Shown here in pieces: positions 206 through 55,371 of a DNA stretch of 64,000 bases. The stretch lies in the NCBI GenBank assembly GCA_004431415.1, contig QPMI01000004.1:1-64000 (forward strand). The letters run 5' to 3'. The number at the start of each line of letters is the position of its first letter. The first letter of the stretch is position 1. This DNA comes from Cyanophora paradoxa CCMP329. Taxonomy: Eukaryota > Plantae > Glaucophyta. The notes below the pieces were generated by a model. It saw only the letters and a program-made list of their open reading frames with translations, ran no database searches and had not been told where the DNA came from. The position numbers were made by a program, and so were the translations under genes.

Positions 206-495
206 AGTCCTGGTCACGACCTCACGTGTGAAGAAGAAGAAGAGTATGTATAAGACACGCCCAAGCCAGCTGTACGGTTTTGACGAAAGGCGAAGGACCC
301 GAAGGCCCAAGGCACAATCGACAGTGAACCAGCCAGACAAGGGTAGTGGCGGCGCAGACTATACAGTTCACCATGTATGCCCCGGCGGTCCGGCGCTCAT
401 ACACGCAAACCTGGAAAGCAATCGGCGAAATCCCAATGCGGGCCTCTTCCTAATGGCGTGGGCACGCCTGCTCCTGGGCCATCCAGCCACTCGCC

Positions 496-2106
496 TTGGC
501 GGATGCTCCGTCGGCCAGTATTTCCGTTATGGACCCGTTTGCGGGGGTCTCTGCAGACTCTGCCTCATCGGCTTCCGGCCCACGTCGCGGTCCTGCTGCT
601 CCTCGCTTTCAGCTTCCCTCTGATGCCCCCGTCACTGGCGGCTGGCCGGTTTACATCACTTCCCCTGTCCCTCGGAAATATGGCACTTTTGCAGTCTGTC
701 CTTTGGGCCGTGAGGCTCTTGTCGCCGCTCTCTCTCAGTTTACCTCCAGTGCAGCCCTTGATGTCGAGCTCATGTACTCTTTCACCCCTGTGTGGGGCGA
801 GACTGCTGATGTCCGCCGTATCAAGTCCTTTGATCGTGAAACTTTCTTCAAATCTCGCAAGGGCTCACTAGAGGCCCTCTGTCAGTTTCCTGCTTTTTCG
901 GGCTCTTCTGTTACCGCTGAACAGTCGTTGTCCCAGTCTGAGCCATCTTGGATTCACCCCACGACTCAGGAAGCTTTTCCAACCAATCCTCGCCAATGTG
1001 ATGTTTATCGCTTCCGCCTCCATCCAGCACTTCAGCTTGGTGCAATCAATGCTCTTCTCGCCCAGCGCCGCACCATGAATACTTTTTTTGGTTTTCTCCC
1101 TGAAACTCATGTAGTTTCTCGGAATGTCCGGCAAGCCCATAAAGACGCCACTATCCAAGCACTTGATAATTTACCAGCAGCTATTATATCCACTTCGTTT
1201 GCTCCTTCCTCCAAAGGATCTTGTCACTTCTTTTGGTATGAATTTGGCTATCAGCCTCCTACCTCTGCCATGTCTGAGGCAGATAGCTCTTTGAACCATG
1301 TCGGCTTATATTCGCACGACGACTTTATCACTGAAATTCTTAGCTTCCAGCATGCTCTTCAGGAGCCGGAATCTATCCTCCTGTCCACTTCTGCGGCGTC
1401 GGCTCCCCGCTGGCACATCGATAAGACTCGGACTATCTCTCTTTCTGATACTCCCATTGACTTCGAAGCCAGCCCTGATGTTTGCCTTGTAGCGTTCCAC
1501 CAGCCTATCAAGACCTTCCAGCACGTTGTGTCTGCTTCTCCAGGCAGCCGCAGTTTTTCTGTCTTTTGTCGGCCTAACTTCGAATCCTGGGACTCTGTCT
1601 CCCCGAATCATCCTTTCAGCTGCCGCTTTAGTCTCCTTGTTCGTGTCCCTTCTACTCATCCCATTCATAAGGCAGCTATGAAGCAGTATTTCCTCTTAAG
1701 AAGGATGACGGCTCTTCTGCTCGGCTAGTCTCTCTTGGTCTTGTGGGCACATCCGGTGGCATCAGTCGCTTCCATTTCAATAGCTTCAAACCGGAATTCT
1801 CTGCTCTCCAGTATTACATGTCTTTGGCTTCTACTCAGAAATGGTCTAGCCTCTCCGCTTTTTCCGCTCATTCTGAGGCAGATTGCCCTGTTCCGGCTGC
1901 CCAGGAATGCACAGACCTTAATCCTCCCTTTGATACTCCTTACTACAGTCTTCGGGCAGCTGGTGATAAGTGTGTCTTGTACCACTTTCATCGAGATCCT
2001 GTTTTCTATTTCTTGAGCTCTACTACTCGTGAGGAGATCATTCGTTTCCATTCCATTCAGCGTGCTTTTGCCACTGCTCAGCAGATTACTCGTGAGTCCG
2101 CAGCAG
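496..2106 (+). CDS. Family A unknown protein (ORF X), frameshifted near 1690; C-terminus resumes at 9090-9203 after the gypsy insertion
   Basis: 410-aa ORF followed by the 1743 frame containing VLYHFHRDPVFYFL. Copy A2 (ORF 13679..14482) reads through the 1690 break. Confidence 0.7.
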
Positions 2107-2308
2107 TGTTGCGAAGCGTAGTTTCCCTTCCCTTTCGCCATAGCGAATGTACCATGTACGCTAGTGATACCCCGTCCCTCGTGTAGGGGTATGTCATTCA
2201 ATCATACGCGGATATTACGCGTGTGTGCACGTGCGTCCCGGCACGGCACTGCGCCGTGTGCGGAAGTGGCTTAGAACCCATCGTATAGCTTCTAACAGCT
2301 TCTTATCA
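2107..2308 (+). repeat. 5' LTR (202 bp)
   Basis: TGTTGCGAAG...CTTATCA; direct repeat of 8893-9085. Confidence 0.95.
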
Positions 2309-2320
2309 GCGGGGCTGCCA

Positions 2321-2561
2321 CCCCAGGCCGGCATTAGGAAGAGGCCCGCATTGGGATTTCGCCGATTGTTTTCCAGGTTTGCGTGTATGAGCGCCGGACC
2401 GCCGGGGCATACATGGTGAACTGTATAGGCGCCCGTCTGCGCCGCCACTACCCTTGTCTGGTTGGTTCACTGTCGATTGTGCTTCGGGCCTTCGGGTCCT
2501 TCGCCTTTCGTCAAAACCGCACAACCGGCTTGGGCGTGTCTTATACATACTCTTCTTCTTC
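2321..2561 (+). mobile_element. 5'-truncated family C 3' UTR inserted just after the gypsy 5' LTR
   Basis: Inverted copy of 230-455 with a (CTT)n tail and an imperfect TSD CTGCCACC/CTGCCGCC. Confidence 0.8.
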
Positions 2562-2980
2562 TGCCGCCGGAAGCCATTGTATTTCGTGGCAGCGGTGGAA
2601 TGTTCGACGCAAAGTGTTCGACACAGCGGTCTCACAGCGTCTGCGCATCGTTCTTCTGATTGCGTATACGCTAACGGTGCGTTCTGCAGCGATTTGCGCA
2701 CTGCGACCTTTCATTGTTGATTCCGCCATTTTGCGGAGAACATAAGCTTGTTGCATCGCGATTCACTCATGGATCTCATTTTCGAAGCTGTGTGCGCTCT
2801 TGGCCGGCTGGCCGAGGTCGTTTGCTTGTGATACCTCCGTTTTCCGTGGAATCCCGCGAGTTTCCGGAGTTGTCTCTTTTCTCTCCTTTTGGAATCTCGC
2901 TTTATCTCTTCTTCTTTCTTTTGGAACGATCTGAAATGTTTTCTTGAACACTGGCCTCGTCAAGCAACACTATTCGAGCA

Positions 2981-4240
2981 GTGTACCGTCGTAGGCTTGG
3001 GCCCTTCGTTAGGTCCTTAGTTAACGACTGTATTAATAAAGCTATCCTGCTCTCCGCACAGGCAGGAAGGCTGGCTGACGAGGACAACGTTTCTGTGGAC
3101 ATTGACCAAGAGGACATCATGGCTGCCCAGCCTAGGGTGGACTTGATTAAGCCGCTCCTGCGCAACCTTCTTCTTCCCAAATTTGAGTATTCTGCTCCTT
3201 CTAGATTCCTTAAGAATGTTCGCGATGTGCTGAAGGCGATCTATGTCCTTCCCGCTGTGGACACCACTCCATACTCCACGTGGACGGCTCAGGCAAAGGT
3301 TGATTTTGACTATGCTTGGCCGCATGTGCAGTTAAAACTCCAGTCTGTTTTCAATGAGGCAGCTGGGGCCCATGACTTTTCTCGAGTGGTCCTTGAATGT
3401 GACAATTGGACGACTTTTCTTAAGAAGTTCGAGGATCACTTTATGCATTCGGATGTCCAGACGGATTCTGCTCGCAATTTCTGGTCCTACACATACCAGA
3501 GTGCTTGTCTCCAGGCTGGTACTCAAGTCAATTTTGAGGACTTTGCTGTGGAGAAGATGAAGCGAGCGGAGGAAGCTGGCATTCTCGAGAAAGTTGTGGT
3601 GAAACAAATTTGGAGTGATGATCTGAAGTTGGGTGAGCTGCCTGCTGAATTGGACGACAACAAACTTCGCTTTTTGCGTCGGCTGCGCAGTCTTTGGACC
3701 GACCGCACTTCATCTTTTTCTTCGGTTTCTCCTTTTGGAATCGGTTCTCTTCCTTTTGGATCGCCGAAAAATGTTTCTGGATTGAACGCTCTCACTTCGG
3801 AGCGTATTGAGTCTCTGATTGATGAGCGAGTCGAATCGAAGCTTAAACAGTTCTCTTTGAAGGTGGATGATAAGCTCGATTCACTTCGTGACGAAACTCG
3901 TCGCCAATTGAGCGAGATTCGGCACGAAGCTCGCCAGCAGTTTGATGAGTTGCGCGATGACTCTCGTCGCACTTCTTCGATTATTTTGGATCGCATGGAT
4001 CAGTTGTCTCGCCAGTTGCAGTATCGCCCTCGCGGTGATAGCTGGCGTGACCAGCCTCGTGGATCTTATAATTTTGATCGCAATCGTTCGAATGACAAAT
4101 TTGTTAATTCTGGAAATGATTCTCGCAATTTTGGAAATTCTTCTGGTGGTTATCGCGGTCGCTCGGCTGAGCGCCGTGGGTCGTCAGCTGACCCTAAGGG
4201 TCGGGGCGGTTCGCAGCCCCGCCCGGCGGGAAAAGCCTAA
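2981..4240 (+). CDS. gag: Gag-like protein of the gypsy element
   Basis: 419-aa ORF between the LTR and pol, with a coiled-coil and an RG/N-rich tail. Start codon uncertain. Confidence 0.8.
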   Translation: MYRRRLGPFVRSLVNDCINKAILLSAQAGRLADEDNVSVDIDQEDIMAAQPRVDLIKPLLRNLLLPKFEYSAPSRFLKNVRDVLKAIYVLPAVDTTPYSTWTAQAKVDFDYAWPHVQLKLQSVFNEAAGAHDFSRVVLECDNWTTFLKKFEDHFMHSDVQTDSARNFWSYTYQSACLQAGTQVNFEDFAVEKMKRAEEAGILEKVVVKQIWSDDLKLGELPAELDDNKLRFLRRLRSLWTDRTSSFSSVSPFGIGSLPFGSPKNVSGLNALTSERIESLIDERVESKLKQFSLKVDDKLDSLRDETRRQLSEIRHEARQQFDELRDDSRRTSSIILDRMDQLSRQLQYRPRGDSWRDQPRGSYNFDRNRSNDKFVNSGNDSRNFGNSSGGYRGRSAERRGSSADPKGRGGSQPRPAGKA

Positions 4241-4269
4241 CCCAGCCTGTTGTTGCCCGCCAGGCTGGG
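4228..4269 (+). promoter_or_regulatory. -1 programmed ribosomal frameshift signal (gag-pol)
   Basis: G GGA AAA in the gag frame, 6-nt spacer, 9-bp stem CCCAGCCTG/CAGGCTGGG. The -1 frame is open into the protease ORF. Confidence 0.85.
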
Positions 4270-7200
4270 GCGGCCAAGAAACCAGCCATTTTCGGCGCAG
4301 CGAATGGACTGCGATCGTTGTTGCCTTTGATTACTCTCAACGAGTTCTTGAAGCGGCAGTCGTTGTCGGTCGCTCGCGCTTTCCCTTTCCCTTCCTTGGA
4401 TGCTTCTCAATCTTCTTCTCCTATTTCTTCTTCTGGTCCCGATGTTACCCTTCAAGAGAATGATCCCATTATCCATGAGGTTGCTTCAGTGGAAATTCGC
4501 CCAGACATTCGTCCTGGCTATGGTCAAGCGCATTCGCGTGGAATTAATAATGCTTTGGATGATTCGAAAAGTGCTAGTAGAGTAGTGGTAGTTAGTGGAA
4601 ATCGTGGAAAATTGGAACAGAAGTCCCTTTCGAATTTCTTTTCTGATGAGCTGCGATGGAAACGAGATGCCCCTGCTAAAAAGCATTTTATATCATCTGC
4701 AATCAATTCGAAGCCGGTTTCCCTGAAGTTGTCTTTTGATGATAATGGCCGAGCCTCAATTGAAATTTGTTCTCTGGACTCCCAGAGCCCTCCTGCTGAG
4801 CCTGCATTCGCAGGGCCGCGTCGCTTCATGACCTCAGCTCCGGGGAGGTCAACTCTGGACGTTTTCATTCAGGGCAAACATCACAAATTCCTTCTCGACA
4901 GCGGGGCAGATGTCTCTTTCATTCTTTCTTCTACTATCTCTTCTCTTGGACTTCAAAATAAGGTGTTTAGAACTATTCACACTCCTTCTGTCAAGCTCCC
5001 GAATTCTGCATTGGTGGCTGTTCCTGGTGAGGTTCATGTGGCTGCTACTATTGGGCCCCTCACCCGGAGTTTTCCTTTTCTTGTGGTTGATTTCCCGGGA
5101 TACGCATTCGATGGCATTTTAGGCCAAGATTTCTTTTCTGATAATGCAGTCACCTATTGCAATAAGGACGCTGACAACCGATTTGTGGTCTTCGCCAAGC
5201 ACCCAGACAAGCCAGTTAAGTGTGATATTCTCTCTTTCTTACCTGGCACCTCTACGCAGCCGAGTTCTCTGTCGCCAGAGACACCGGAATCTGACCCTCG
5301 GACGACTCCAGCACTCGCAGAGTGTCCAAGGAACATGGTCATATTCTGGAGGTTGCAAGGGAGGTTAAAATTGAACCTGGTGTGCAACGGAAGGTTGAAC
5401 TGCAAGTCGGAGGCAACCGCTATTTGCCGGATTGTGAAGGTTTTCTTGTCAACTTCTACAAATGGGACGACAATCAGGAAATCCGTGTGGCAAACGGACT
5501 TGCTGCGTGTCGTGGAGGCAAAGTATATGCTTTAGTTTCGAATTTGAGCAATCGTTTTTCAGAACGACCAGTTGTTTTGAAGAAGGGCCGTGCAATCGCA
5601 CGATTTGTCCCTGAGAAAAATCTCGAAGCTGAAGTATTTGACTTGGCTCTCAATTTGAGTTATGATCAAGATGGGAACGGCAAGTATGTGAAGGTCGACC
5701 GGCCTGGCGAGGCCTCGACACCTTCGGTACCAACATACTCTGCTCAGTACACTTGCGCCGACTCATTGCAAGTCAACTCTGCCGATGCCAAAATTGTTGG
5801 CAATTCTTCTGTGGAAATCGCGCCTCCAAAGTGTTTACCGGAGTCCGAGAATGCTTTTAAAAATGTTTCTGATAGAGTAGGTCTTCCCGAGTGTTCATAT
5901 CCATATGAGGAGAAGTTAGGTAGTTTTTCGCATTTGAACGCTGTTCCGATCGATCAAGCTTCGACTATTATTTTTGATGAACTGCGGCAACGGTATGGCG
6001 CCGACATTATTGATGCTCTCCGAGCCGTCGATATTGGCAGTCGGGATGATACGCCTGCGGAGCGCGCTGTCATGGCTGACTTCCTTGCACAGAACTGGGA
6101 CTTGGCCAAGGCTGCGCTTCCTCCGTACGACCCAAGTGCGCCTCATCCCCCGATCAAGCACTCGATCAAGACTGGGGATGCGCGCCCCATCGCGGAGCCC
6201 CCTCGGAGGCACTCGCAGACTGAACGAGAATTAATTATCGATGAGACCAAAAAGTTGCTTTCTCGCAATCTTATTCGTCCCTCTCGCTCACCTTGGGCCG
6301 CTCCTGTGGTCCTTGTGCGCAAGAAGGATGGATCTCTTCGATTTTGCATTGATTATCGCAAATTGAATTCAGTTACTGCGGACGACGCTTATCCTTTGCC
6401 TAGAATTGATGATGCTCTCGAAGCTTTGACTGGAGCTATTTATATTACTGGTATGGATGCGCCTGATGGCTACTGGGGTGTTGAAATGGAGGAGGAGGAC
6501 AAGGAGAAGACTGCTTTTCGGTCTCCCCTTGGACTTTTTGAGTGGAATGTTATGCCCCAAGGCCTAAAGACGGCCCCTGCCACTTTTCAGATGATGATGA
6601 ACAGCGTTCTTGGCACTTATTTATATGTATTCATTTTGGTATATTTGGATGATATATGTGTATTTTCGAAATCCTTGAAGCAACACCTTGCTGATCTTCA
6701 GTGGGTGTTTGATGCTATGAGACGGGCAAACATTTCTTTAAGCCCAAGAATCGAAATTCTTCAAGGCTGAATTGGAGTATCTTGGATTTGTAGTTACTAG
6801 ACAGGGCATCAAGCCTCTGCACAAAGGTGGAGGCTGTTCGCAAGTTTGCGACCCCCATCTGTATCAGAAGTTGGACTTTTCTGGCATGACTGGATATTAT
6901 AGAATCTTTGTACTTTATATGCAGTTCTTGCGGCGCACTCTATGATCTTTGCGCCAAGAGTTCACATTTTCATTGGACTGCTCGAGAGGATCTGGCTTTT
7001 CGGAATTGAAAGAGTTGCTTTGTTCTGCTCCCATCCTTTCGCTCCTAATTCTCTAAGTCTTTCATTCTCAAACTGATGCTTCTAAGACCGGAGTTGGTGC
7101 GGTCCTTCTCAATTGGATGAATTGGGATGAAAAAGTTGTTTCCTTGCTTCTCACAAATTCTCATCTCCTGAGAAGAAGTGGATCGGGAAGTTGTTATGAA

Positions 7201-8880
7201 TATGCAGCCGAGTCCCTTTCTGATGACAGCAGAAGTGGACAGTCACGGAGCAGAGTTGTATGCAATTGGTGGGCTGTCACCAAGAAGTTCCTCAGTATCT
7301 CCGTGGCAAGAAGTTCATTATCAAGTCTGATCACTCGGCTCTTCAATATTTGAAATCGGCTAAGAGTTGCCCAGTGCTCGCATCACTCGCTGGATTATGG
7401 ATATGCAGGAGTTTGACTTCGAGATCCAGCATAAGCCGGGCAAGTCTAATGCTGATGCGGATGCTCTTTCTCGCCTGGTGCGAGTAGCAGTTCTTTCCTT
7501 GGAAGCGATGGAGTTTTCTTCTAATTTTTCGAGCGCTTTCTGGATGCAATTGAGTTGCAGTTGAGTTTGCCCCGGCTCGAATTCGGGATGAGCAAATAAA
7601 TGATGTTATTTTGGCGGATATGATTAGTATTTAGAATCAGATATTACTATTGAACCGCAAGGTGTCAACAAGGAGGCCGAACGCCAACTCAAGAGCGGCA
7701 AGTTTCTGTGCAAGATGGCGTTCTCGTCCACACTCGGCCTTCGGACAAACTTGTGCGTATTTGCGTACCAGATATCTTAAATCAACTATTCTGTCATCGG
7801 TACACCGCACGCTCGGACATCCTGGAGTCGGCAAAATGTACAATCTCTCAAGCGCGGTACTACTGGCGGAGTATGTTTTCTGATGTCGCTACATTTGTTT
7901 CGACATGCGCCGATTGCCAGCGTGTCAAGAATTCCAAGACTGTACAAGCGGTTCCTCAATTTGAGATTCATGCTGACCGGCCGATGCACACTTGGAAATT
8001 GACATCGTCGGGCCTTTTCGAAGTCGAAGCAAGGCAACAAATATCTTGATTACTATTATCGATGTTTTTACGCGTTGGTGCCATGCGGTGCCGCGCGAAC
8101 GAAGTCGGCTATGTCCGTCATTCGGCATTGTTCGACCACTGGATACCCCTTTATGGAGTCCCCGCCAAGATTTCGTCGGATCAGGGCGGCGAATTCAAGA
8201 ATTTGCTTCTTAATGAACTGGAGCGTCTTTTTGGAATAAAGGCGGTCTTTTCTTCTCTTATCATCCGCAGTCACAAGGAGCTGTGGAAAAATTGAATGAC
8301 ATTTGTCACTCGCCTACGGTTTTATATTGACAAAATGCTTCAACATGGGATCTCTCTCTTCCATTCGCTCTTCGCAGTGCGCAATTTCATTAATCCTACA
8401 ACGGGCTACACTCCTTTCGAAATGTTGTACGGGAGGCTTGTACTCTTCCTGCGACTTGCTGGCTACTCCTGAAGTTCAAGTGACAACTTCTGAGCCTACT
8501 GGTTACCAGCCGTGTTGGCTCGGCGGTTCTCTCGCATTTATACGATATTCAGCAAGCTAAGGGAATATCTTGCCAAGCAGCAGCAGCGGCCTTCCTCAAC
8601 AGTTTTCATTCCTGGAGAAGTTGTTGCTGTGAAGACCCCTTCACTCGGCGGTCTGACAGCTTCCCACCGTTTCACTGGACTTGGACGTGCTTAAAGATGT
8701 TTCTCATGCAAGGGAGTTACTTTCTTGCTGGAGTATTCTGGTCCTAAGGAGCGTGGTTCTCCTGCTGAGGCTCGCGTCAAATGGTTCATGCCTCTCGGCT
8801 CAAGCCTTGAGGACCCTGATTGATCTCTTTCTTTCTTTTCTTCCTTGGCCTTGGCCAGCGCGGACGTGGCCTTTTCTTAC
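4228..8880 (+). CDS. pol: Pol polyprotein (aspartic protease, RT, RNase H, integrase), with many frameshifts after about 6750
   Basis: LLDSGAD; SPWAAPVVLVRKKDGSLRFCIDYRKLN; YLDDI; TDAS and SDHSALQYL; HRTLGHPGV and CADCQ; SDQGGEF. Confidence 0.95.
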
Positions 8881-8892
8881 TTGGAGGAGAGT

Positions 8893-9085
8893 TGTTGCGA
8901 AGCGTAGTTTCCTTCCTTTCGCATAGCGAATGTACATGTACGTAGTGATACCCGTCCCTCGTGTAGGGGTATGTCATTCAATCATACGCGGATATTACGC
9001 GTGTGTGCACGTGCGTCCCGGCACGGCACTGCGCCGTGTGCGGAAGTGGCTTAGAACCATCGTATGCTTCTAACAGCTCTTATCA
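8893..9085 (+). repeat. 3' LTR
   Basis: Same sequence as the 5' LTR apart from single-base deletions; preceded by the PPT. Confidence 0.95.
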
Positions 9086-10317
9086 GCAGCACAGGCTCAG
9101 GCCCAGTCTTCTGATGCTCCTGCTAGCAAGCGTACTCGTCTTTCTGATCCTGAGTCTAACAACTCTTCTGTTGGTATGGCAGATGCTGCTTTTAATGAGT
9201 AATCCTGAGTACTACATGACCGTATATGTTTCTTTGTCCCTGCGGGGCCTCCTGATACCTGGGGCCGCCCGACAGGGAGCGGGCCGTCACGGGGTTCAGG
9301 CCTTCCTATGTGGCGCGTCGGGTGTCCATATAGGTGCCATTTCCTTGCTGGCGCCCTGGGGTGGTGCCCAGGGTCCTGTTGCGGCTCCACTCACTCCCCA
9401 TGCTAGTGGTCCCTGACGGGCCTTGCACGTCCCATCGGGCCTCTGCGGCTTTGCATACCCAGTCTTGGCTGCATGGAGTGTCTACTGCATTTCTCTCTCT
9501 CTCTCTGCCTCTTCCTAATGCCGCCTGGGGTATTCCCGATCCCGTTCACATTTGTAAGCCGAATTGTAGTGTTAGAGGAGAAAGATTAAAGAACCATGTC
9601 ATCAGCATCATCACCAGTCATGGCACCACAGAGAACCAGAATCATCACTGAAGACCGGAAGGTCAGCAGGAGAAGAAAGATCGAACGTTAACAGAAGAAG
9701 AAAAGATGGGTCACTGGATCCGTCCGTGAAACCATCAAGAAGCAGGAAGAGCAGGGGAGAGGTCGACGCGCTCAGGGTGAACCAGGGGGCAAATAGGTCA
9801 GTGTCCATAGGACAGAGGAAGAAGGAAGAGATGATGAATGGCTCCAACATCGAGAGCATCGTCAGTGATGTCAGCAGCAACTACAGGAGAAGACAGAGGT
9901 AATTCAGCGTCGAGTTCGATCAAAGAGGTCAATAATCACTTAGGAGAGAGTGGAGGCAACTGGTATCATCAACCGTATCATCGACAACGTAGACGCTTGC
10001 ACAGGAGGTCCCAAATATCGACACGACGACGGCGAAGAGGTGGCTGTCTTCAGTGTCAAAATCCGGCGGGGGTGAGGGGAGTGTGCAGGGGTGATGGAGG
10101 CGGAGGAAGCATAGGGTCAAGAGCAGGAGCAGGGTCTGGTGCTGAGGAGGGTCGTCGTCGTCCGAAGAGATGCTTGTGGAAGAGTCTCAGGAGCATCAGG
10201 GCCCAGGTCTGAAAGGTCAGAGGAGTCCGAACCATCATCAGGAGGGGACATATACCCTGCAGATCTTCCTTTTCAAGGCGTTGCAGCAGGACAGGCGCAC
10301 ACTGGCATAGGCAAACT

Positions 10318-13294
10318 GAGAGAGAGAGAGAGCAAGTAAAAGACACGCCCACGCCAGCAAGACTGGGTATGACAGAACCGCAGAGGCCCTAATGGAGCTT
10401 GCAAGGCTCTGTCAGGGACCACTAGCGTGGTAGTGATGAGAGATGCTCTTGAGAACCTGCGAAAGACAGCTGCACAAAGTCCTACCCGGGCCGTAGGTCC
10501 CATGCAAAGAAAAGCCCTAACTTTCCTGAACTGACCTGCTCCCTAACAGGCCAGACAGGGTGTTAGGGAAGACGGGAGAGGGAAACCGAAGACGATCATT
10601 CAAGATTAGAAGTACAGAAAAAAATTACACAATTGTGTCATTAGAACCAGAAGGAGTAGAGGGATCAGAGGGCGAGAAGCTTAGCACTAGGCTACGGCCA
10701 GTGCCATCGAGATGCTGACCTTCCTCAAATGAATCAGAAACGATTTCTCAGGGCCAGAAGAGAAGAGTATGTATAAGACACGCCGAGCGGTTGTGCGGTT
10801 TGACGAAAGGCGAAGGACCGAAGGCCCGAAGCAAGGGCCAGCTGCTTGCGAGCCTCATCATAAAAAGCATCGAGGCGGGGGCGCACAGAGGCAGGCAAAA
10901 AGTAAAACATGGGATCCTGATGGAAGTGGTACAAGAAGTGTGCTCATCAACATCAAGAATGCTGTATTTTTGTCAGGCTCCTGGCAAGGGATCTGGTAGC
11001 AAGGAGAGGTGGAGGCAAAAGAGTAAGAAGAAGGATCGAGAGCCTTGCCATTGTGAGCAAGAGAGGAATAATACTCAAGAGAAGAGTACTCAGGAAGAAG
11101 AGTCTGCACATAAAATTTGTGAATGTAGTTATCCGAGCCAAGAATCATGAGGGAACGCATGGCGAGGGGCCGAGCGGGCCGAGGCTTGATGAAACTAGTA
11201 CGACGCTCGAGGCTCTGGAAGAGCATAGAAGCCAGGGCACTTTCAAAATAGACTAAGATGAGCACGATCGGTATGAGCAGCAGGAAATCACCAAGCTCAG
11301 GGCGACAAAGAAGATCATAGCGGGAGCCAGAGCAGTGAAAGTGGTCTTAGCGACCATATCAAGTACAGGCTGAGTAAAGGCAGCTGCCAGAAAAACTGGA
11401 GAAGGAATGGACTTATCCAAGCCAGCGAGTTTGAAGGGATTGAAGGGGATGGTGTTCTCAGAATTCAGCTCTACACGCTCAACAGGAAGCGAAGACATAA
11501 AGACACAATCTGGCTTGGAAAGGTTAAGTGCCATCGTTTTGAGTTCAAGCCAGGAAGGCTTGGCGCCAAGGCGAATGAGGAAGCGGGGTGGCTTAGCACC
11601 AGAGGGGCCAGCACCATTGGAGGACTCAGGGGCAGTACGGAGAACAGATTGATAATAAGAAAGCTCGATCGGGAAAAATTGGTCTACCACATCAGAGACA
11701 CCAACAGTCTTAAGGCCATAAAAGACATCATATGCTTGAAGGAAATGGGGCTTGGTCTGCAAAGGAGTGAGGGTCGAAAGCATGGTACGAGCTGGGTGAG
11801 AAATTGGAGTACAGTTGAAAATCGAAGACAAGGTACGATGATGAGCTAAATAGGCGCCAAAGCCACCAACAACTGAGCGATAGTAAAACTGATAAGTGAA
11901 AGCATTGAAGGTAGCACCACTATAGGAATCCTGAGAAGTGGACTGCTTAACAAAGCCGTGCTTCGCGGAGGAGGACCATGGGTGCTGAGAGAACATGGAA
12001 TTGATGGGAGCAGGCGGTTCTGGAGGCCGAGAGGCGGACAGATTCAGGAGGTCACGGCCAAAGTCTGCAGGTTCATTCACGATGACACCTTCCTGGATAC
12101 AGAAGCGCATGGCGACGGAGACATCATCGAAGGGCTTGCAAGAGCGAAGCGCATCGGCAAGGACAGTCTGAACATGCATGTACTTGGGCAGGCCGCCAAT
12201 CTTGCGGGTGACGGGCCGCGTCATGAACGCGGCAAACTCGCGGACGCGAGGAAGGTGGTGGTAGTCAGGGACGCGGGAATTGCCGAAAGCGATGGTGACT
12301 GAGCGTCAACAGCGAAGAAGTCGGCAACCTCCACAGAACCCTCAAGTGCACGGGGAGCCGGCGGCGGTCCCTGCTGCTGGCGGCGCTGCCCCGGAGCACG
12401 GGCGGATTGGCGGACATTCTAAAAGCTGCGTACAGTGGAGCAAAGGTCAGGATTGTCCGAGATGGAAAGATTTGAACGTTGGCTGGGCGAGCCACAAATC
12501 GGCGTCTAAGCGCGCAGCTGGCGGCCAGGATCTGCGTAAAGAGCGCACCCGGCACACGGGGCGAGAGGTATGTGGCCAGAGGCCAGAAATGGGGCCGACG
12601 GCCAACGGGGGGGGTACGGCAAACTGAGCAACAAGGGGCTAGGGGCCAGATCGGGGCTAGGAGCAGGCTGAGCGATATGTTCGCAATGCTCATAAGAGGC
12701 TAGGGAATGGTCATAAGCAGCGAGCAGCGTCCAAAGAGATTAGCGCAAAATGAGGAGTGAGATGGATCAACCGTTGAACCGTAGAAATGAAACGGAAATC
12801 CCCACGGACATAAGTGACTTTGAATCGAGGTAAACGACGAGGAAGCATGTCCATGAAATCATCGAGCTCGCGAAACAAGGCAGACATCAGAGTGGCCGTC
12901 TTCAAACCGGTTTTGGAGGAAGGCGTAAGGGGCAGCTGTATGTCAGGGTCCATCGCAAACGTAGCAGCAGCTTCAGAGCGACCTGTATGATAGGCTAGAG
13001 AATACGAGCAAAATGACGTGCAGACCAAGAATCCGAACAACCTGCCACTCCCAGTTCTGGAGAAACATCCAAGTATCAGAGAAACGGACCGAGCCAGTGA
13101 GCAGCCAGGCAACAAAGCGTGCAGAAGGGATGGGCATCGGCTGGAGCTGCAGGGCATGGAAGAGAAGCGACCAGAACTGCTGCACTACGGGGCAAAGAGC
13201 AAAGACGTGCAGCGCGTTGCAGTGCCGGTGGCAGACCGGACATAGCGAAGAGAGAAGCTCACTGTCAAGCAAATTCGCCGAAGCGGGACGCTGA
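10318..13294 (-). mobile_element. 5'-truncated L1/Tx1-like LINE, family B (zf-RVT, long downstream coding region, 3' UTR, (CT)n tail)
   Basis: CPVCHRHCNALHVFALCPVVQQFW CCHC finger; then ORFs 12224-11253, 11265-10858 and YHFHQDPMFYFL; tail at 10318-10332. Confidence 0.8.
10758..10831 (-). mobile_element. Very short family C 3' end inserted in element B
   Basis: Flanked by CA(A)GGGCCAG TSD; empty site visible at 16400-16409. Confidence 0.8.
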
Positions 13295-14430
13295 AGATCA
13301 CGTGAAAAAAAAGAGAGAGAAATGCAGTAGACACATCCATGCCAGCAAGACTGGGTATGACAAAGCCGCAGAGGCCCCGAATGGGACGTGCAAGGCCCGT
13401 CAGGGACCCACTAGCATGGGGAGTGAGTGGAGCCGCATACAGGACCCTGGGCCACCACCCCCAGGGCGCCAGCAAGGAAATAGAACACCCTATGTGGACA
13501 TCCGACGGCGCCACATAGGAAGGGCCTGAATCCCGTGACGGCCCGCTCCCTGTCGGGCGGCCCGAGGGTATCAGGAGGCCCCGCAGGGACAAAGAAAAAT
13601 ATACGGTCATGTAGTACTCAGGATTACTCATTAAAAGCAGCATCTGCCATACCAACAGAAGAGTTGTTAGACTCAGGATCAGAAACTTGAAAGACGAGTA
13701 CGCTTGCTAGCAGGAGCATCAGAAGACTGGGCCTGAGCCTGTGCTGCTGCGGACTCACGAGTAATCTGCTGAGCAGTGGCAAAAGCACGCTGAATGGAAT
13801 GGAAACGAATGATCTCCTCACGAGTAGTAGAGCTCAAGAAATAGAAAACAGGATCTCGATGAAAGTGGTACAAGACACACTTATCACCAGCTGCCCGAAG
13901 ACTGTAGTAAGGAGTATCAAAGGGAGGATTAAGGTCTGTGCATTCCTGGGCAGCCGGAACAGGGCAATCTGCCTCAGAGTGAGCGGAAAAAGCGGAGAGG
14001 CTAGACCATTTCTGAGTAGAAGCCAAAGACATATAATACTGGAGAGCAGAGAATTCCGGTTTGAAGCTATTGAAATGGAAGCGACTGATGCCACCGGATG
14101 TGCCCATAAGACCAAGAGAGACTAGCCGAGCAGAAGAGCCATCATCCTTCTTAAGAGGAGAATACTGCTTCATAGCTGCCTTATGAATGGGATGAGTAGA
14201 AGGGACACGAACAAGAAGACTAAAGCGGCAGCTGAAAGGATGATTCGGGGAGACGGAGTCCCAGGATTCGAAGGTAGGCCGACAAAAGACAGAAAAACTG
14301 CGGCTGTCTGGAGAAGCAGATACAACGTGCTGGAAGGTCTTGATAGGCTGGTGGAACGCTACAAGGCAAACATCAGGGCTGGCTTCGAAGTCAATGGGAG
14401 TATCAGAAAGAGAGATAGTCCGAGTCTTAT

Positions 14431-15594
14431 GAGGAATGTACCCCCCTGCGTGGGCGCGCCTGTTTCCGGGCCATCCTGCCACTCGCCGCGGCGTCCTAGC
14501 ACTGGTTCGTGCTCTCCTTACTGTCCTTGTACATCATACGCATGCGCCTCGTGTGAATTCGGCATTCGTGCCTTTCATCTCGGCCGTTGTGCCATTCCCC
14601 TGCCTGTCGCGGCTGTATACTTCATCTTCGATGCAACACGTCTGAAATGCGCCCTCTGACATGCCTACGTCACGCCGTCGCCTGGCGCCTTTTCCCGCTA
14701 ACCGCTTCGTCGCTGTAGACGTGGCTGCTCATTGCTTGCTCTCCTTCAGTGCGCATTGCATCTCTGCATCTTTATGTCGTCCGGTAGCCGATCGCATCGC
14801 TAACAAGCCGACCTTTCTGCCACCATTGCTAACTGCTGCCTGCGCTTCGGCATAGCATTGTCTGCTTGCTGCGCATCGCCTCGACTCACCTCCTTCGACT
14901 CACCTCGCTTGCTCCGCATGCCGCTGCCGGACGCTGTCGCACACCTCCTTCGACTCACCTCAGGCGTGCTCCTACTCGTGAGTCAGAGACACAGACCCAG
15001 GCCCAGTTTTCTACTGCTCCTGCTAATAAGCGCTCGCGGATTTCTGACGGACAGACTCTGTTATACACCTTCCTTGACTCACCTTGTTTGCTCCGCATGC
15101 CGCTGTCGGACACTGTCGCATACCACTCACTTCAGCTCTGCTGCTCCAGATTACTCGTGAATCCGTTGCACAGGCTCAGACCCAGTCTTCTGATGCTAAT
15201 AAGCGCACTCGTCTTTCTGATCCGGAGACTAATAACTCTTCTGTTGGTATGGCAGATGCTGCTTTTAATGAGTAATCCTGAGTACTACTTGACCTTATAT
15301 TTTTTTCTTTGTCCCTGCGGGGCCTCCTGATACCCTCGGGCCGCCCGACAGGGAGCGGGCCGTCACGGGGATTCAGGCCCTTCCTATGTGGCGCCGTCGG
15401 GTGCCCACATAGGGTGCCCTATTTTCTTGCTGGCGCCCTGGGGGTGGTGGCCCAGGGTCCTGTATGCGGCTCCACTCACTCCCCATGCTAGTGGGTCCCT
15501 GACGGGCCTTGCACGTCCCATTCGGGGCCTCTGCGGCTTTGTCATACCCAGTCTTGCTGGCATGGATGTGTCTACTGCATTTCTCTCTCTCTCT
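14431..15594 (+). mobile_element. Family A internally rearranged derivative A3
   Basis: 10-bp TSD CGAGTCTTAT (14421-14430, 15595-15604). Has the family A 5' and 3' ends, and an internal duplication of about 180 bp (14885-15220). Confidence 0.85.
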
Positions 15595-15956
15595 CGAGTC
15601 TTATCGATGTGCCAGCGGGGAGCCGACGCCGCAGAAGTGGACAGGAAGATAGATTCCGGCTCCTGAAGAGCATGCTGGAAGCTAAGAATTTCAGTGATAA
15701 AGTCGTCGCGCGAATATAAGCCGACATGGTTCAAAGAGCTATCTGCCTCAGACATGGCAGAGGTAGGAGGCTGATAGCCAAATTCATACCAAAAGAAGTG
15801 ACAAGAACCTTTGGAGGAAGGAGCAAAGGAAGTGGATACAATAGCTGCTGGTAAATTATCAAGTGCTCGGATAATAGGATCTTTATGGGCTTGCCGGACA
15901 TTCCGAGAAACTACATGAGTATCAGGAAGAAAACCAAAAAAAGTATTCATGGTGCG

Positions 15957-16476
15957 AGAGAGAGAGAGAGCAAGTAAAAGACACGCCCACGCCAGCAAGA
16001 CTGGGTATGACAGAACCGCAGAGGCCCCTAAAGGAGCTTGCAAGGCTCCGTCAGGGACCCACTAGCGTGGGTAGTGATGAGAGATGCTCTCGAGAACCTG
16101 CGAAAGACAAGCTGCACAAAGTCCCTACCCGGGCCGTAGGGTCCCCATGCAAAGAAAAAGCCCTAACTTCCTGAACTGACCTGCTCCCTAACAGGCCAGA
16201 CAGGGTGTTAGGGAAGACAGGAGAGAGGGAAACCGAAGACGATCATTCAAGATTAGAAGTACAGAAGAAAATTACACAATTGTGTCATTAGAACCAGAAG
16301 GAGTAGAGGGATCAGAGGGGCGAGAACGCTTAGCACTAGGGCTACGGCCAGTGCCATCGAGATGCTGACCTTCCTCAAATGAATCAGAAAACGATTTCTC
16401 AAGGGCCAGCTGCTTGCGAGCCTCATCATAAAAAGCATCGAGGCGGGGGCGCACAGAGGCAGGCAAAAAGTAAAAA
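15957..16476 (-). mobile_element. Family B 3' fragment nested in A2
   Basis: Matches 10318-10905; (CT)n tail; a small target deletion instead of a TSD. Confidence 0.8.
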
Positions 16477-17415
16477 AGGCATTAATTGCCCCAAGCTGAA
16501 GTGCTGGGTGGAGGCGGAAGCGATAAACATCACATTGGCGAGGATTGGTTGGAAAAGCTTCCTGAGTCTTAGTGTTAATCCAAGATGGCTCAGACTGGGA
16601 CAGCTGCTGTTCAGCGGTAACAGAAGAGCCCGAAAAGGCAGGAAACTGACAGAGGGCCTCTAGTGAGCCCTTGCGAGATTTGAAGAAAGTTTCACGATCA
16701 AAGGACTTGATACGGCGGACATCAGCAGTCTCGCCCTACACAGGGGTGAAAGAGTACATAAGCTCGATATCAAGGGCTGCACTGGAGGTAAACTGAGAGC
16801 GAGCGGCAACAAGAGCATCACGGCCCAAAGGACAGACTGAAAAAGTGCCATATTTCCGAGGGACAGGGGAAGTGAGGTAAACTGGCCAGCCGCCAATGAC
16901 GGGGGCATCAGAGGGAAGCTGAAAGCGAGGAGCAGCAGGACCGCGACGTGGGCCGGAAGCCGATGAGGCAGAATCTGCAGAGACACCCGCAAACGGGTCC
17001 ATAACGGAAATACTGGCTGATGGAGCATCCACCCGCGCGTCACGGTGAGAAGCTTGACGAGACATGAGTAGTGGAGCACAATGCGCACTGCGCAGCAAGC
17101 CACTGCACGTATGACAGTCAGCGTCACATCCGATGGCGGGAAGTTCGAATCGGAGAAGTCCGGCGAAGGGCGAGGCGCATGAAGAAGGTCGCTAGGTGAC
17201 ATGGCACTAGATGACAGAGAGGTAGCCACATCGGGCAAGGGATTGGCACAACGGCCGAGGTAAAAGGCACGAATGCCGAATTCGGATGCGGCGCATGCGC
17301 ACGATGGAAGAGGACAGGAGGGAGAGCACGAACCAGTGCGAGGATGCCGCGGCGAGTGGCAAGATGGCCCAGGAGCAGGCAGGCCCACGCCGGGGGTACA
17401 GATCACGTGAAACCT

Positions 17416-18610
17416 TCAGCCATCAGTCATGTCATCAGCCTCTTCGTCAGAGATAAGCACCATTGGGGAACCTGGGTCATCAGCGAGATCCATAGGGGCA
17501 GCGGATGGGAGAGTTGGAGGAGGTGAAGGCCGCAAGCGTTTGAAAGAAACCTGAGGTGGGACACCAGGAATGTTATCACCATGATCCAGAGCACCAGGGT
17601 CTGGAGAAGTCACTCGACGACGCTTAGGCGGGACAATAGAAGGAGAAAGAGGACCAGTATCCATGGGCTTCATAGGCGCAGAAGAAGGCAGAGGGGCAGA
17701 AGAGGGAGGAGCTAGGGAAGCAATGACAGCATGACTCGCGAAGTCGGGCTCAACATCAACAGCGTCGATTCGGATAGGAGAGATCGGCAGCAGATCAGGG
17801 GCAAGCTCAGTGTCATCCACATAGATGATAACTTGAGGAGAGGGCCGAGGTGAACCTGTGTCATTGATAGCAGCACCAACACGAGAAGGAGAACGATGAG
17901 CACGAGAAGACGAGGCAGCAGCACTAGCAGACTGACGAGCAGCACGAGCCTCACGAGTAATGATATCTGCAACATGCTGACCCTTCTGCTTAATGTGGAA
18001 AGACTTAATAGTGTCGGAGACAGCAGCGGGCAAAAAGTAAAAAGTAGGATCACGGTGGAAGTGATATAAAATGCGAGAATCGGAAAGAGCCCGAATGGTA
18101 TAATACGCAAACAAAACTAGGGGCTTCTGCAATGTTGGCGTACCCTGCAACCCCAGTCCACGGGCGTGTCTTTTGCTTCTGTCTTTTGCTGCATCTCTTT
18201 TTCTCTACCAAATTTAAATAGTGTTCTCCTGTTTGTTTTTGCGCTTTCTGCATTTTTTAATACTGCTTTTGGGCTTATTTGTCCAGTTTTCCCGAATGTT
18301 CTTCCAGGTTTCCCCCCCACACCCCTCTTCCCTAACACCCTGTCCGGCCTGTTAGGGAGCAGGTCGGTTCAGGAGTTAGGGCTTTGTCATTGCATGGGGG
18401 CCCTACGGCTCGGGTAGGGACCTTGTGCAGCTTGTCTTTCGCAGGTTTTCAAGAGCATCTCTCATCACTACCCACGCTAGTGGGTCCCTGACAGAGCCTT
18501 GCAAGCTCCTTTAGGGGCCTCTGCGGTTCTGTCATACCCAGTCTTGCTGGCGTGGGCGTGTCTTTTACTTGCTCTCTCTCTCTATAATACGCAGTACGAA
18601 GAGGATGGGT
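17416..18610 (-). pseudogene. Third ORF X paralog (family C type), interrupted at 18110-18582
   Basis: HPLRTAYYTIRALSDSRILYHFHRDPTFYFL reads through once the insert is removed. Confidence 0.65.
18110..18582 (+). mobile_element. SINE-like element with the family B 3' end
   Basis: 11-bp TSD TATAATACGCA (18099-18109, 18583-18593); (CT)n tail. Confidence 0.85.
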
Positions 18611-19079
18611 ATGATCTGTACACTCCTAGTCTAGGCCTAGCCTAGTAGGGCTGTATACGTAATATTAATATTAATGGCGGTGGCCCAGTGGTACATTCTT
18701 CGAACTTGGAATTCGAATATATAAACCATGGCCAAGCAGTCAGAAGCTTAAGCTTCTTATAAATTAAGTTCTTCTTCACTGAGTCATACAGCATAATTAT
18801 CCAATATGAACCCTTGAAGCAACCTTTGTTGCCAGCCTGGTTTCCACTGAGTCGAGCCACTCGTACCATGTACCCCAGTCAGTAGTCTTGCTGTACCCTC
18901 CAGGACCGCACCACGGCTCCCAATACAGCCCCACCACCCCTCGGGGCAATCTCGCGTGTAGCGCACGGGCTTGGAGCACAGCTGGGCAGCCACAGCACAG
19001 CAGAGCGGGCCAACAACACCAATAATACCTTATAATTACATATATATAGCTAGCTATGCTTTCTGTCACTGAGTCAGGG

Positions 19080-20760
19080 CGTATTGCCGGACTTGGGATC
19101 CGGAGCTTTAAAGTTCATGTAAATTCTTGATGGAGCCGTTCCTGTACGTACCTCTTCGGAGCTCTATATCCGATGATCGAAAATTTTGCCTTCATGATAC
19201 CTTCAATTCACCCAATCAGCCTGCAGGTCGCCCTGTGTCTTTGGGTGGGCTTGGTGCGCCCTGTCCCGCCGGGGCTCCGCGAGGCTCACTTGTATTTCCA
19301 GCTGGCTTTTGCCGCAAATTCTTTCAAGTTTGGGCCCATGGGATCCGGATCGTGGCTCGCTTCTCCGATGGCACTTCGATCGATCCTGGACGAGAAATTA
19401 TTAATGCTTTTACAGAGAACGGTGGCTTTGGGCTCTGGCTTCCTTCTCTAAACACAACTCAGTGACTGATCGCTTGGTGAAGCCGTTGTGAAGCCGTTCC
19501 TTCTTTGAAGCCTGGCGGACAATATTCGATGTCAAGAGGCCCCGCTGTGCTCAGCGGCTTCAAAAAGCTTGGGATTTCCTGCGTATGCGTATGCCTGCGT
19601 ATGCAACCATGAAACACGAACCTGGTGGTCTCGCTATTGGCCCTTTCTCGAGACTTGCTGCTGAGCGCCTCTCGCTCCAGGGTGTAGCTCTCTGTCGCGT
19701 TCGTCTTCTTCCTGGCGCACAGCTCGCTTTCCGTTAGGTTGACGTGCCCTGCAGTGCTTCGATTGACAGTCCCGTTGCCCTCCCCGATGTGCTTGCAATC
19801 CGGCCCGCGGCCCGTGCGATCGACTTCATTCCCGTGCCTGCGCATGCGCTTAGCCTCGTTAAGAACGCTTGCAAGTTGTCCTCCATGCCCGCACTCGTCC
19901 GACGCGCGCACTGATCGCTTTCCCTGGTTCAACACGGTGATTCCCGACCTGCGCTACGCTCTCAAGCAGCGCGTCCTTGACGGCTAACGCTCTCCGCACA
20001 TCGTCTCGTATCGCTGATATGATATTCAGCGTCCTGCTTCGGCAAATTTGCTTGACAGTGTCCTCTCTTCGAATTCTCTGTGTCCGGTCTGCCACCGGCG
20101 CTGAAATTGCAATGCGCTGCACGTTTTCGTTCTCTGCCCTGTTCAACGGTTGTGCATCAGTTCTGGTCGCTCATCTTTCATGCCCTGCAGCTCCAGCCGA
20201 TGCCTATTCCGGATCCTTCCGCACAGGCTCGGTCCGTTTCGCTGACTCCTGGATGTTTCTCAGAGTCTGCAGAACTGGGAGTGACAGATTGTTCGGATTC
20301 TTGGATTGCACATCATTTTGCTCGTACTCTCTGGCCTATCGTGCAGGTCGCTCAGAAGCTGCTGCTACGCTTGCAATGGACCCCAACACAGAGCTGCCCC
20401 TTACGCCTTCCTCCAAGACGGGCTTGAAGACGGCTACTCTGATGGCTGGCCTGTTTCGCGAGCTTGACGATTTCATGGACATGCTTCCTGACCCTTCACA
20501 CTCTTTGTTCAATCATGAATGCTAATGTCTCAGAGTCTTGGATGCTGCTCGTGCTTATGAACATTCTCTAGCCTCTTTTTGAGCACTGCGAGCATATTGC
20601 TCAGCCTGCCCCTAGCCCCGATCTAGCTCCTAGCCCTCTTGTACATGTTGCCCAGTTTGCCTGTTGCCCACGTACTCTTCTGGCAACCAAGCTACCCGGT
20701 GACCTGCCGTTGCGTCTGCAAGCTACCCTTCCATGGGGAACTATGCATGTCTCCCGAAGC
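19080..20760 (+). pseudogene. Degenerate LINE ORF2 C-terminal fragment (family B relative)
   Basis: GGFGLWLPSL post-RT-like motif. The zf-RVT region 20020-20660 aligns with 13290-12615. Confidence 0.75.
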
Positions 20761-33573: not shown

Positions 33574-34234
33574 ATGGGGAGGAATCTAATCGTCAGCGAG
33601 AACGGCGGCAGCATCGTCGAGTTCTCGAGCCAGTAGTACGTGCTTTCTCCCTGCGAGCGCCACAGCCGCCGATACACGCGCAGCCATCACGAGTCTCGCT
33701 GTCTAAACCTGCTGATCCGGGACCCGGGGCTTGTGTGGTTCTCGAGCGTCACAGAACCACGTGCGCGGTCGGCGCCGCGGCGTTTCGCCGGCGCTGATGC
33801 TGCGCAGTGCCCCAGCACGTCGTCTTCAAACTCGCGGAACCCTCCAGCATCTCGCGCGTGGGCATCTACCTCCATGGCGAGAACAACCAGAGCCCAAAAC
33901 GTTGCGTGCTTGTCCTCGATGCTCCGCCTGCCGACAATCGTAGCCCTGACCTCGATGTTGCGCAGACCTTCAGGTGCTGCTGTCGGCCGACGGGCTAAAA
34001 TGGGATGCAGTCGTGGATGCCGAGCTGGAGCACCGGGCGGGGGACCACCTCTTCGACGTCCCAGAGCGGCCACGCGCATCTTTCCTCAAGCTCGTCGTCG
34101 TCCGCGCCCCCCGCCCTTACTCGGCCCCGACGGGGCCCCTTTTGACGTCTCCGTCCCTGTTGCAGACGGAGAACTTTGGCGGCTCGGGGATCTTCGTTTC
34201 GAAAGCATACTGCTTCGGGGAATCGTGCTCGTAG
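33574..34234 (+). CDS. Small galactose-binding/discoidin-fold protein, multi-exon
   Basis: GGSIVEFSSQ...NLL...WFS...PQHVVFKL...ISRVGIYLHGENNQSPK...LSADG...FLKLVV/TENFG. Confidence 0.65.
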
Positions 34235-34397
34235 AGAACTCGTGAGGCGTGCCCGTAGAGAATTTTGCGAGATTTCCAACCAAGAGCGGCACTTGAACAC
34301 ATGCACTATCCAAATTCGAAGGGTCATCTCGACGATGTCACCCTTCTAAGATTCGCAGTCAGGGCCCCCACGCTGATGGCAGAGGCGACGGGGGAGC

Positions 34398-38805: not shown

Positions 38806-38954
38806 TGCGCGGCTGTCGAGGCCTGTGCCGGAGAAGCTTGCCGCAGGTAGCTGTGTGGATCTAGCTTCAGAAGTACAAGCCGGTTCTAGCTGCGGCAGGA
38901 TGGAGATAGGTCTTACTTCCCACTCGCCGTACCCCGGCTTCTAACTTTGGAGAA

Positions 38955-41900: not shown

Positions 41901-42228
41901 GGCCCCGGGGGACCCCGCCCCGCGCCCCTCACCGGCCCCCGCAGCTTCCTCTTCCTCCAGCTCCGCGAGCGCGCCGCCGGGGCGCCCCTCGCCCCCGCCC
42001 CGCCCCGCCGGCCCCGCAGACGGCGCCCCCGCCGCGCCCGGGGCCCCAGCTCGCCATCCACTTCGGCTCGGCCCCGGGGGCCGCGCGCGGGGCGGGGCCC
42101 GCCCTCAAACCTCCCGTGACGCCCCCCCCGGAGTACCGGTGCGCTCCCCCGGCCCCGGCCACGCAGGCGGGCGGCGCCGACGGCAGCGCAGGCGGCCGGA
42201 GTCGCGCAGCAGCCGCCGCGGCTCGTAG
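38955..42228 (+). CDS. Coiled-coil protein with a C-terminal CEP164-type WW module, copy 1
   Basis: VEHARYLG/MDPVFDAPYLWIAEQALNAPLPEGWSEH...YYYN...SIWEHP; Ala/Glu/Arg coiled-coil exons. Confidence 0.8.
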
Positions 42229-44993: not shown

Positions 44994-45286
44994 AGCAACC
45001 GACTCCAGAATAGCCAGGCAGCCGCTCAGCGCTTCATCTGCGCCCTCGATAGATATGCAGCAAGGGCGTGTTCTGTATGTTGCTCTCCGAGGCCTGCGCC
45101 GCCAACGACATTGCGCGGCTGTCCGAGGACTGCGCCGGAGAAGCTAGCTCGCTGCAGGTCGCTGCGCGGATCTAGCTTCAGAAGTACAAGCCGGATCCAG
45201 CTGCGGCAGGGCTGAGATAGCCCGAAGTGGCCCCTCTAGCCGTACCCCGATGTCAAACTTTCAACTTTGCCTGAAACTTTGGAAAA

Positions 45287-55291: not shown

Positions 55292-55371
55292 CGGCGAAAG
55301 TGAGCGAATTGGGAGCAGCAACTCGCGGCACAGGCCGGGGCGGCGGGGCGAGGGGCGAGAGCGGTGCGGGG

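Follow-up and report, generated by a model that had tools for sequence, protein, structure and literature searches.

Family A units and their boundaries

The window analyzed here is a 64,000-nucleotide stretch of the glaucophyte Cyanophora paradoxa CCMP329 (contig QPMI01000004.1 of assembly GCA_004431415.1, positions 1 to 64,000 of the forward strand), the first 20 kb of which are a nest of retroelements, with host genes starting at about 20.7 kb. Within this nest lie three copies (A1, A2 and A3) of an element family, family A, whose full-length form contains a single open reading frame (ORF), ORF X, and no reverse transcriptase (RT). A sequence-only reading of the window had placed three units at 456-9506, 13308-17399 and 14431-15594, each flanked by its own target-site duplication (TSD) of 14, 13 and 10 bp, respectively, and both the coordinates and the duplications proved to be exact. 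A1 (456-9506, plus strand) is bordered by gcctcttcctaatg at 442-455 and 9507-9520, A2 (13308-17399, minus strand), which is colinear with A1, by agatcacgtgaaa at 13295-13307 and 17400-17412, and A3 (14431-15594, plus strand) by cgagtcttat at 14421-14430 and 15595-15604. Exact 10- to 14-mers bordering three units are far above chance expectation. The empty site of A3 was also found, in a DNA contig from a public run that jumps over 14421-15594.

Alignment of the 5' ends revealed a terminus common to the A units, GTACCCCC..GCGTGGGC. A2 starts with GTACCCCCGGCGTGGGC, A3 has 7 extra nt followed by GTACCCCCCTGCGTGGGC, and A1 starts with GCGTGGGC, 10 nt further in than A2. At the other end, each unit finishes in a (CT)n tail, which has 7 repeats in A1, approximately 3.5 repeats plus T5 in A2, and 6 repeats in A3. 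The earlier view that the units share one 5' terminus and a (CT)n finish, and are discrete insertions instead of random 5' truncations, is borne out by this alignment, by the tails and by the flanking duplications.

The 9-kb and 4-kb sizes of the A1 and A2 spans are explained by nesting. Self-comparison of the window showed that A1 itself is approximately 2.07 kb and A2 approximately 2.4 kb, and that the two are colinear once the nested elements are removed, each with a head, a single ORF, a 3' untranslated region (UTR) and a tail. A full family-A unit measures approximately 2.1-2.4 kb. It opens with a unique head of about 340 nt, which starts with GTACCCCC..GGCGTGGGC and harbors a 231-nt intron that can be spliced; ORF X (about 563 codons) follows, then some 300 nt of 3' UTR, and finally (CT)n. 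The 5' part of A1 (456-2106, plus strand) contains the head, from which the first 10 nt are missing and in which TTGGC takes the place of 320 deleted nt; the 5' portion of ORF X occupies 496-2106. ORF X is then split by a Ty3/gypsy long terminal repeat (LTR) retrotransposon (2107-9085, plus strand) that is not part of family A, and the 3' part of A1 (9090-9506, plus strand) provides the last ~35 codons, the 3' UTR and (CT)7. The gypsy element has 204-bp LTRs (2107-2310 and 8893-9085, plus strand; the pair is 95% identical), is flanked by GCAG and shows the gene order gag, PR, RT, RNase H, IN, with a degenerate integrase and Pfam matches to PF13650, PF00078 (RT, E 5e-30), PF17917 and PF17921. 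Directly after its 5' LTR there is a 260-bp 5'-truncated LINE-like tail of the (CTT)n type (about 2311-2570; LINE, long interspersed nuclear element). The absence of RT and endonuclease claimed previously for all units holds for the family-A sequence proper and fails for the span of A1, which holds the nested Ty3/gypsy RT.

A2 is read from the minus strand throughout. Its 5' terminus and 5' UTR exon 1 (17334-17399, 66 nt) are followed by the 231-nt intron (17103-17333, GT..AG) and by ORF X in three segments. Segment 1 (16479-17065) has an ATG at 17065-17063 and an A1-type ATG at 17002-17000, segment 2 (15595-15956) is 94% identical by tblastn to residues 192-312 of A1, and segment 3 (13624-14430) contains YHFHRDPVFYFL and the family-frame stop (13626-13624). 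Between segments 1 and 2 lies a nested 5'-truncated fragment of a related B type (15957-16478, minus strand; an X-like ORF end, 3' module and (CT)n), which is 95% identical to 10318-10757/10832-10907, and between segments 2 and 3 lies A3. The 3' UTR of A2 (13308-13623) ends with a structured 3' module of about 110 nt that the B type also has, followed by (CT)3-4 and T5 as the tail. A3 is a 1.16-kb derivative of family A without ORF X, composed of a 170-nt head, about 370 nt of A3-specific sequence that includes an internal repeat, the final ~40 codons, the 3' UTR and (CT)6. The internal direct repeat of A3 (14887-15047 versus 15066-15220; 160 nt, 73% identical) is derived from the end of ORF X, and variant contigs from RNA-type runs omit 276 nt of this region (14960/15237).

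ORF X is damaged in both copies and carries a signature of selection

The sequence-only reading had assigned to A1 and A2 an ORF of about 550-600 aa homologous to a LINE extension. A frame of approximately 563 codons does run across both copies, but it is broken in each, and the homology to a LINE extension was not upheld (see below). In A1, a single base is missing near 1690. The A2 copy contains a TAG in frame (16738-16736), lacks about 16 nt at the site of the nested B-type fragment, and carries near the end of the ORF an A2-specific 7-nt insertion, absent from other copies, that creates a premature stop at 13681-13679. In A3, ORF X is gone except for the last ~40 codons.

To quantify selection, A1 and A2 were compared codon by codon with a script that skipped indel columns. 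Over 555 codons they differ by 22 synonymous and 21 non-synonymous changes, which corresponds to a ratio of non-synonymous to synonymous substitution rates (dN/dS) of 0.29 (binomial p=1e-4). This indicates that the lineages leading to A1 and A2 were under purifying selection, and the neutral evolution of the ORF considered in the earlier reading was not borne out. DNA contigs from other copies have TGG in place of the TAG of A2 and do not contain its 7-nt insertion, so less damaged copies of ORF X exist elsewhere in the genome. These contigs have approximately 4 times the depth of an A1-specific junction (a rough ratio and not a copy number).

Sense transcription and a retained 5' UTR intron

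Contigs from two RNA-type runs of two different studies (X15 and X19) match A2 without mismatches at 16446-17102 and then continue at 17334-17406. The skipped 231 nt begin with GT and end with AG on the minus strand, which is the sense strand of A2 (CT..AC on the plus strand), and the 17102/17334 joint was present in no DNA contig. These spliced contigs show that the element is transcribed in sense and that its 5' UTR intron is functional. The same intron is retained in the genomic copy of A2 and partly in A3.

B-X, another RT-less X element within LINE-like sequence

The region 10318-13294, presumed previously to be the coding extension of a LINE, is composite: an element that we name B-X (10319-12617, minus strand) is nested in a LINE-like fragment, D. 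B-X starts with GTACCCCCCCC; its head spans 393 nt, its ATG lies at 12224, and its X-like ORF, despite two frameshifts, is colinear with ORF X of family A (25% identity). It contains no RT, and it also holds a 76-bp foreign fragment (10757-10832), the 3' module shared with family A, and (CT)7. The direct repeat (CT)CAGTTTGCC, of 9-11 bp, is present at 12618-12628 and 10310-10320, and a donor-like GTGCGC is found at +70 of the head (the donor of A2 is at +67). On the basis of its start, head, ORF, 3' module and duplication, B-X is therefore a second RT-less X element, and the 2.5 kb that had been taken for LINE coding sequence beyond the zinc finger are, at this locus, a nested insertion. Between 9000 and 10900, many homopolymer runs in the 3' UTR of A1 and in B-X are one base shorter than in the paralogues of these sequences, possibly through assembly errors, in which case some of the frameshifts in this interval are not real.

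Fragment D (minus strand; 13300 to 12618, 10309 to 9521 and 455 to 228) is interrupted by B-X and carries A1 in its 3' UTR. It has a sub-threshold match to zf-RVT (E 0.15) and an acidic tail at the C terminus, and it finishes in (CTT)n after a 230-nt 3' UTR. D is itself inserted in the 3' UTR of a further LINE-like copy, C, with the repeat cacgtga, as confirmed by a contig of an uninterrupted copy (loose end at 17407). Copy C (17416-18625, minus strand) is 5'-truncated and has an X-like C-terminal domain (YHFHRDPTFYFL) in frame with a 190-aa acidic tail; it is the sole place in the window where an X-like C-terminal domain continues into an acidic tail and a 3' UTR of the LINE type. Within C there is a non-coding mini retroposon of 474 bp (18110-18583) with the TSD tataatacgca and a B-type 3' module; in its head the 3'-terminal motif recurs (GGGCGTGTCTTTTGCTTCT), and the GTACCC start is preceded by 30 extra nt.

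The repeat of about 230 nt with a (CTT)n end, which looks SINE-like (SINE, short interspersed nuclear element), is the 3' UTR of this acidic-tail LINE-like family (C and D), which occurs here as tails of varied length that are truncated at the 5' end. Such tails lie at 1-196, 228-455 plus 9507-9540, 2311-2570 and 10757-10832, and the points at which (CTT)n-type sequences are truncated are scattered (about 1.7 kb, at least 1.2 kb, 260 bp and 76 bp). Scattered truncation is typical of LINEs, whereas the four (CT)n-type units begin at one terminus. No LINE-type RT was found in the window, where the only RT is that of the nested Ty3/gypsy element, so the "family B RT" invoked in the sequence-only reading has no counterpart here. 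An RT upstream of a diverged LINE-like paralogue (19127-19465) was considered and rejected for want of Pfam or PDB support.

A 3' module shared by A-type and B-type ends

The last ~110 nt before the tail are strongly conserved between A-type and B-type ends and are present in family A, B-X, the nested B-type fragment and the mini element. The predicted consensus fold of this module has 47 pairs, 5 of which show compensatory changes between A and B. The 3'-terminal motif is GCTGGCGTGGGCGTGTCTTTTAC, and the last 24 nt before the tail of B-X are identical at 21 positions to the 3' UTR of the LINE-like family C/D. By rough depth estimates, A-type ends are present at about 27-fold and B-type ends at about 80-fold depth.

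Relatives and predicted structure of ORF X

ORF X is an orphan by most searches. No match was obtained for any of its pieces in Pfam at E up to 10, for the ORF in a PDB sequence search, in word-index protein searches queried with 410 N-terminal residues, with 249 C-terminal residues and with an A+B profile, or, in a usable form, in two ESM Atlas feature searches. Metagenome scans with a 19-mer of the 3' module and with peptide patterns gave no match, and scans of viral contigs gave no protein relative and a single 17-mer chance match without flanking similarity. A HMMER search of 1.84 billion proteins, with a two-row alignment that yielded 400 profile positions and left out the C-terminal 160 aa, returned two matches. 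One of them, P0001, is a true relative (E=2e-6), a 176-aa fragment from another sequencing run that has in common with ORF X the motif TGGWPVY..P.P.K[FY]G.F. Its contig (L001, 977 bp, from an unrelated public run) contains a GTACCCC-type head at L001:88, approximately 215 nt upstream, and thus combines a homologous head with an N-terminal part of X. The ends of L001 are imperfect inverted repeats (1-87 versus 860-960) that enclose this A-like head and the truncated ORF. The second match, P0002, was rejected as a repeat artefact, and the GIY-YIG-like look of "PVYITSPVPRKYGT" was likewise rejected, since Pfam did not support it at E values as high as 10.

AlphaFold2 models built from shallow paralogue alignments were unusable as a whole (mean predicted local distance difference test (pLDDT) 29.8 and 44.3); in the C-terminal piece, residues 170-240 only reached a pLDDT of 60-80 and were predicted to form three strands and a long helix. 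A wide structural search with VIA-align gave Z values of at most 4.3, with generic helices throughout, and assigned no fold.

Proposed mobilization of family A in trans

We propose that family A is a non-autonomous, protein-coding retroposon that is mobilized in trans, that ORF X is maintained by selection, and that B-X represents a diverged sister family; we give this reading a probability of about 0.6. The anatomy of the units, their TSDs, the lack of an RT, the selection on ORF X, the spliced sense transcripts and the common 3' module are observed, and mobilization in trans, the nature of the partner and the role of X are inferred from them. The insertions have the hallmarks of target-primed reverse transcription: TSDs of variable length (14, 13, 10 and 9-11 bp at A1, A2, A3 and B-X, respectively), a simple-repeat tail that varies between 3.5 and 7 CT units, and heterogeneous or truncated 5' ends (A1 10 nt short, A3 7 nt longer, the B-type fragment at 15957-16478 5'-truncated). 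According to this model, a sense RNA of the element would be made by RNA polymerase (Pol) II, and target-primed reverse transcription of its unspliced form would create the new insertions, leaving TSDs of 10-14 bp. The RT and the endonuclease would be supplied in trans by an autonomous element and would recognize the shared 3' module and the terminal motif. ORF X, retained by selection, would most likely encode a particle or accessory protein that acts in cis and helps its own RNA to compete for the borrowed RT, much as ORF1p does for HAL1 and Gag for HeT-A. Selection and genomic context suggest that X is probably such a cis-acting accessory protein; the idea that it is a mobile effector found no support. 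As the partner, a LINE seems likelier than a Penelope-like element, which is the main alternative, and the best candidate lender would be the C/D family or one of its relatives. B-X and D agree at 21 of the 24 nt that precede the tail. The head of family A has no similarity to the LINE-like fragment.

Several observations weigh against this proposal. No RT-bearing owner of the 3' module was found in the 64-kb window, and neither fold nor homology, by the Pfam, PDB, profile and structure searches, assigns a function to ORF X. Both inspected ORFs, those of A1 and A2, are broken. The copies inspected are three of family A and one B-X, the genome total of ORF X copies being about four by a rough depth ratio, and the upstream sequence, with or without an RT, was seen for the inspected copies only. 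The expressed RNA has the TAG allele of A2 itself, so the transcribed locus is the dead A2 copy, and the RNA contig extends 7 nt upstream of the element start, so that read-through instead of an internal promoter possibly produced it; moreover, the "RNA" label of both runs is a guess. Finally, the homology of a D paralogue (20020-20661, 79% identical, compared with 12618-13300) fades at the same CAGTTTGCC at which B-X sits, a coincidence that could be due to chance, to an insertion hot spot or to a misread boundary.

The units could instead be the 3' halves of a LINE in which X is the C-terminal extension of ORF2, produced from a subgenomic or internally promoted transcript or by a preferred truncation. 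Copy C, in which the X-like C-terminal domain is in frame with the acidic tail and precedes a (CTT)n-type 3' UTR that is also found on D, speaks for this explanation, and the 3'-terminal motif common to B-X and C/D fits it as well. However, the heads of A and B-X (340-393 nt) have no counterpart in the LINE-like fragment, and A1, A2, A3 and B-X have one common start right after the TSD, whereas (CTT)n-type tails are truncated at scattered points. In addition, a family-A DNA contig at approximately 4 times single-copy depth (a rough ratio) terminates at the A 5' terminus (17405). We regard this origin as unlikely.

Retention of an intron could point to another type of machinery. Family A could be a non-autonomous Penelope-like element (PLE) of the Chlamys type, moved by a PLE RT with a GIY-YIG endonuclease and not dependent on a LINE. 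The 5' UTR intron of A2 was kept after retroposition (partly so in A3) and is spliced in RNA, and both intron retention and a 5' UTR intron, which overlaps the promoter, are known in Penelope and Chlamys-3_cRei (PMC8557442). Non-autonomous Chlamys elements also share their 3' ends with autonomous ones (PMC8557442). Family A resembles these green-algal elements in its retained 5' UTR intron, in a 3' end similar to that of a longer family and in an echo of the 3' end within its head: the heads of A, B-X and the mini element open with a condensed 3'-terminal motif (..ACCC..GGCGTGGGC), like a short pseudo-LTR. Yet this short echo is all that the four inspected copies show, as they abut their TSDs and have no pseudo-LTRs and no head-to-tail, tandem or inverted arrangement. 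Their clean TSDs of 9-14 bp lie at targets that are not microsatellites, unlike those of Chlamys, and their tail is a LINE-type simple repeat, (CT)n. Moreover, Rfam identified no hammerhead ribozyme, and neither a PLE RT nor a GIY-YIG match was found within the window. Movement by a PLE is rather improbable in our judgement.

That ORF X comes from the captured mRNA of a host or viral gene, retrocopied into a small retrogene family that does not propagate itself, as its low copy number (about four by the rough depth ratio) and an orphan protein without retroelement signature might suggest, is very hard to reconcile with a head/ORF/module layout kept in two diverged families, with the transposition of the ORF-less A3 and of the 474-bp mini element with the same termini, with a retained intron and a (CT)n instead of a poly(A) tail, where a processed retrogene would be intron-less and polyadenylated, and with a 3' module shared with B-type ends of about 80-fold depth.

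Comparison with known RT-less retroposons

Protein-coding retroposons that lack an RT are rare, and the textbook cases, HAL1 and HeT-A, both encode a Gag- or ORF1-type protein. HeT-A, a telomeric non-LTR retroposon of Drosophila, encodes a single non-RT Gag-like protein, obtains its RT in trans and targets chromosome ends. Family A likewise encodes one non-RT protein and would obtain its RT from elsewhere, but it is interstitial, is flanked by TSDs and encodes a protein without a recognizable domain, whereas that of HeT-A is Gag-like and the element sits at chromosome ends. HAL1 "encodes only ORF1p" (PMC5753468). The likeness to HAL1, drawn already in the sequence-only reading, lies in a non-autonomous non-LTR derivative that keeps a single ORF, has no RT and is mobilized in trans; the differences are that HAL1 has the ORF1 of L1, a poly(A) tail and a clear L1 origin, and family A an orphan ORF, a (CT)n tail and an intron-bearing head. 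A HAL1-like derivation from a LINE is not upheld as it was written and is plausible only, because truncated copy C alone links an X-like domain to a LINE-type tail. SINEs with LINE partners of stringent recognition share with family A the arrangement of head, body, a 3' tail common to a longer element and a simple-repeat end. Family A differs from them in its length of 2.1-2.4 kb, its intron, its coding capacity and its head, which is not of the Pol III type (Rfam at E up to 1 over 1-24000 gave no match to a tRNA, 7SL or 5S head) and in which the spliced intron is of Pol II type. Nor is family A an autonomous LINE, having no RT or endonuclease of its own. Family A thus works like HAL1 and HeT-A but belongs to neither, as it has no ORF1- or Gag-type domain.

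A bolder and tentative possibility, to which we attach a small probability, is that family A and B-X constitute an undescribed class of intron-retaining, protein-coding, RT-less retroposons with X as a new accessory factor, represented by at least two diverged families here and a relative in another organism. In such a class, X might perform a catalytic step, for example target nicking or priming, and the elements would be semi-autonomous parasites of a foreign RT. The protein retained here is an orphan that is under selection, occurs in two diverged families and has a relative in another sample. This makes the elements a system for asking what a parasite RNA must itself encode in order to use the RT of another element, how a Pol II transcript that is still unspliced becomes the template, and what the X domain does. 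The selected orphan protein and the retained intron are the parts most worth following.

Other features of the window

Beyond the retroelement nest, the host genes include a histidinol-phosphate-aminotransferase-like gene, a plant-type catalase and RPS25, with a host GC content at third codon positions of 73-83%. The GC content of the window is 47-61% over the first 34 kb, and blocks of 72-87% GC with long ORFs in several frames are found further on, at 34000-48000 and 52000-57000. Two near-duplicate ORFs (39842-42550 and 46475-48892) each contain a WW domain (E 1e-11).

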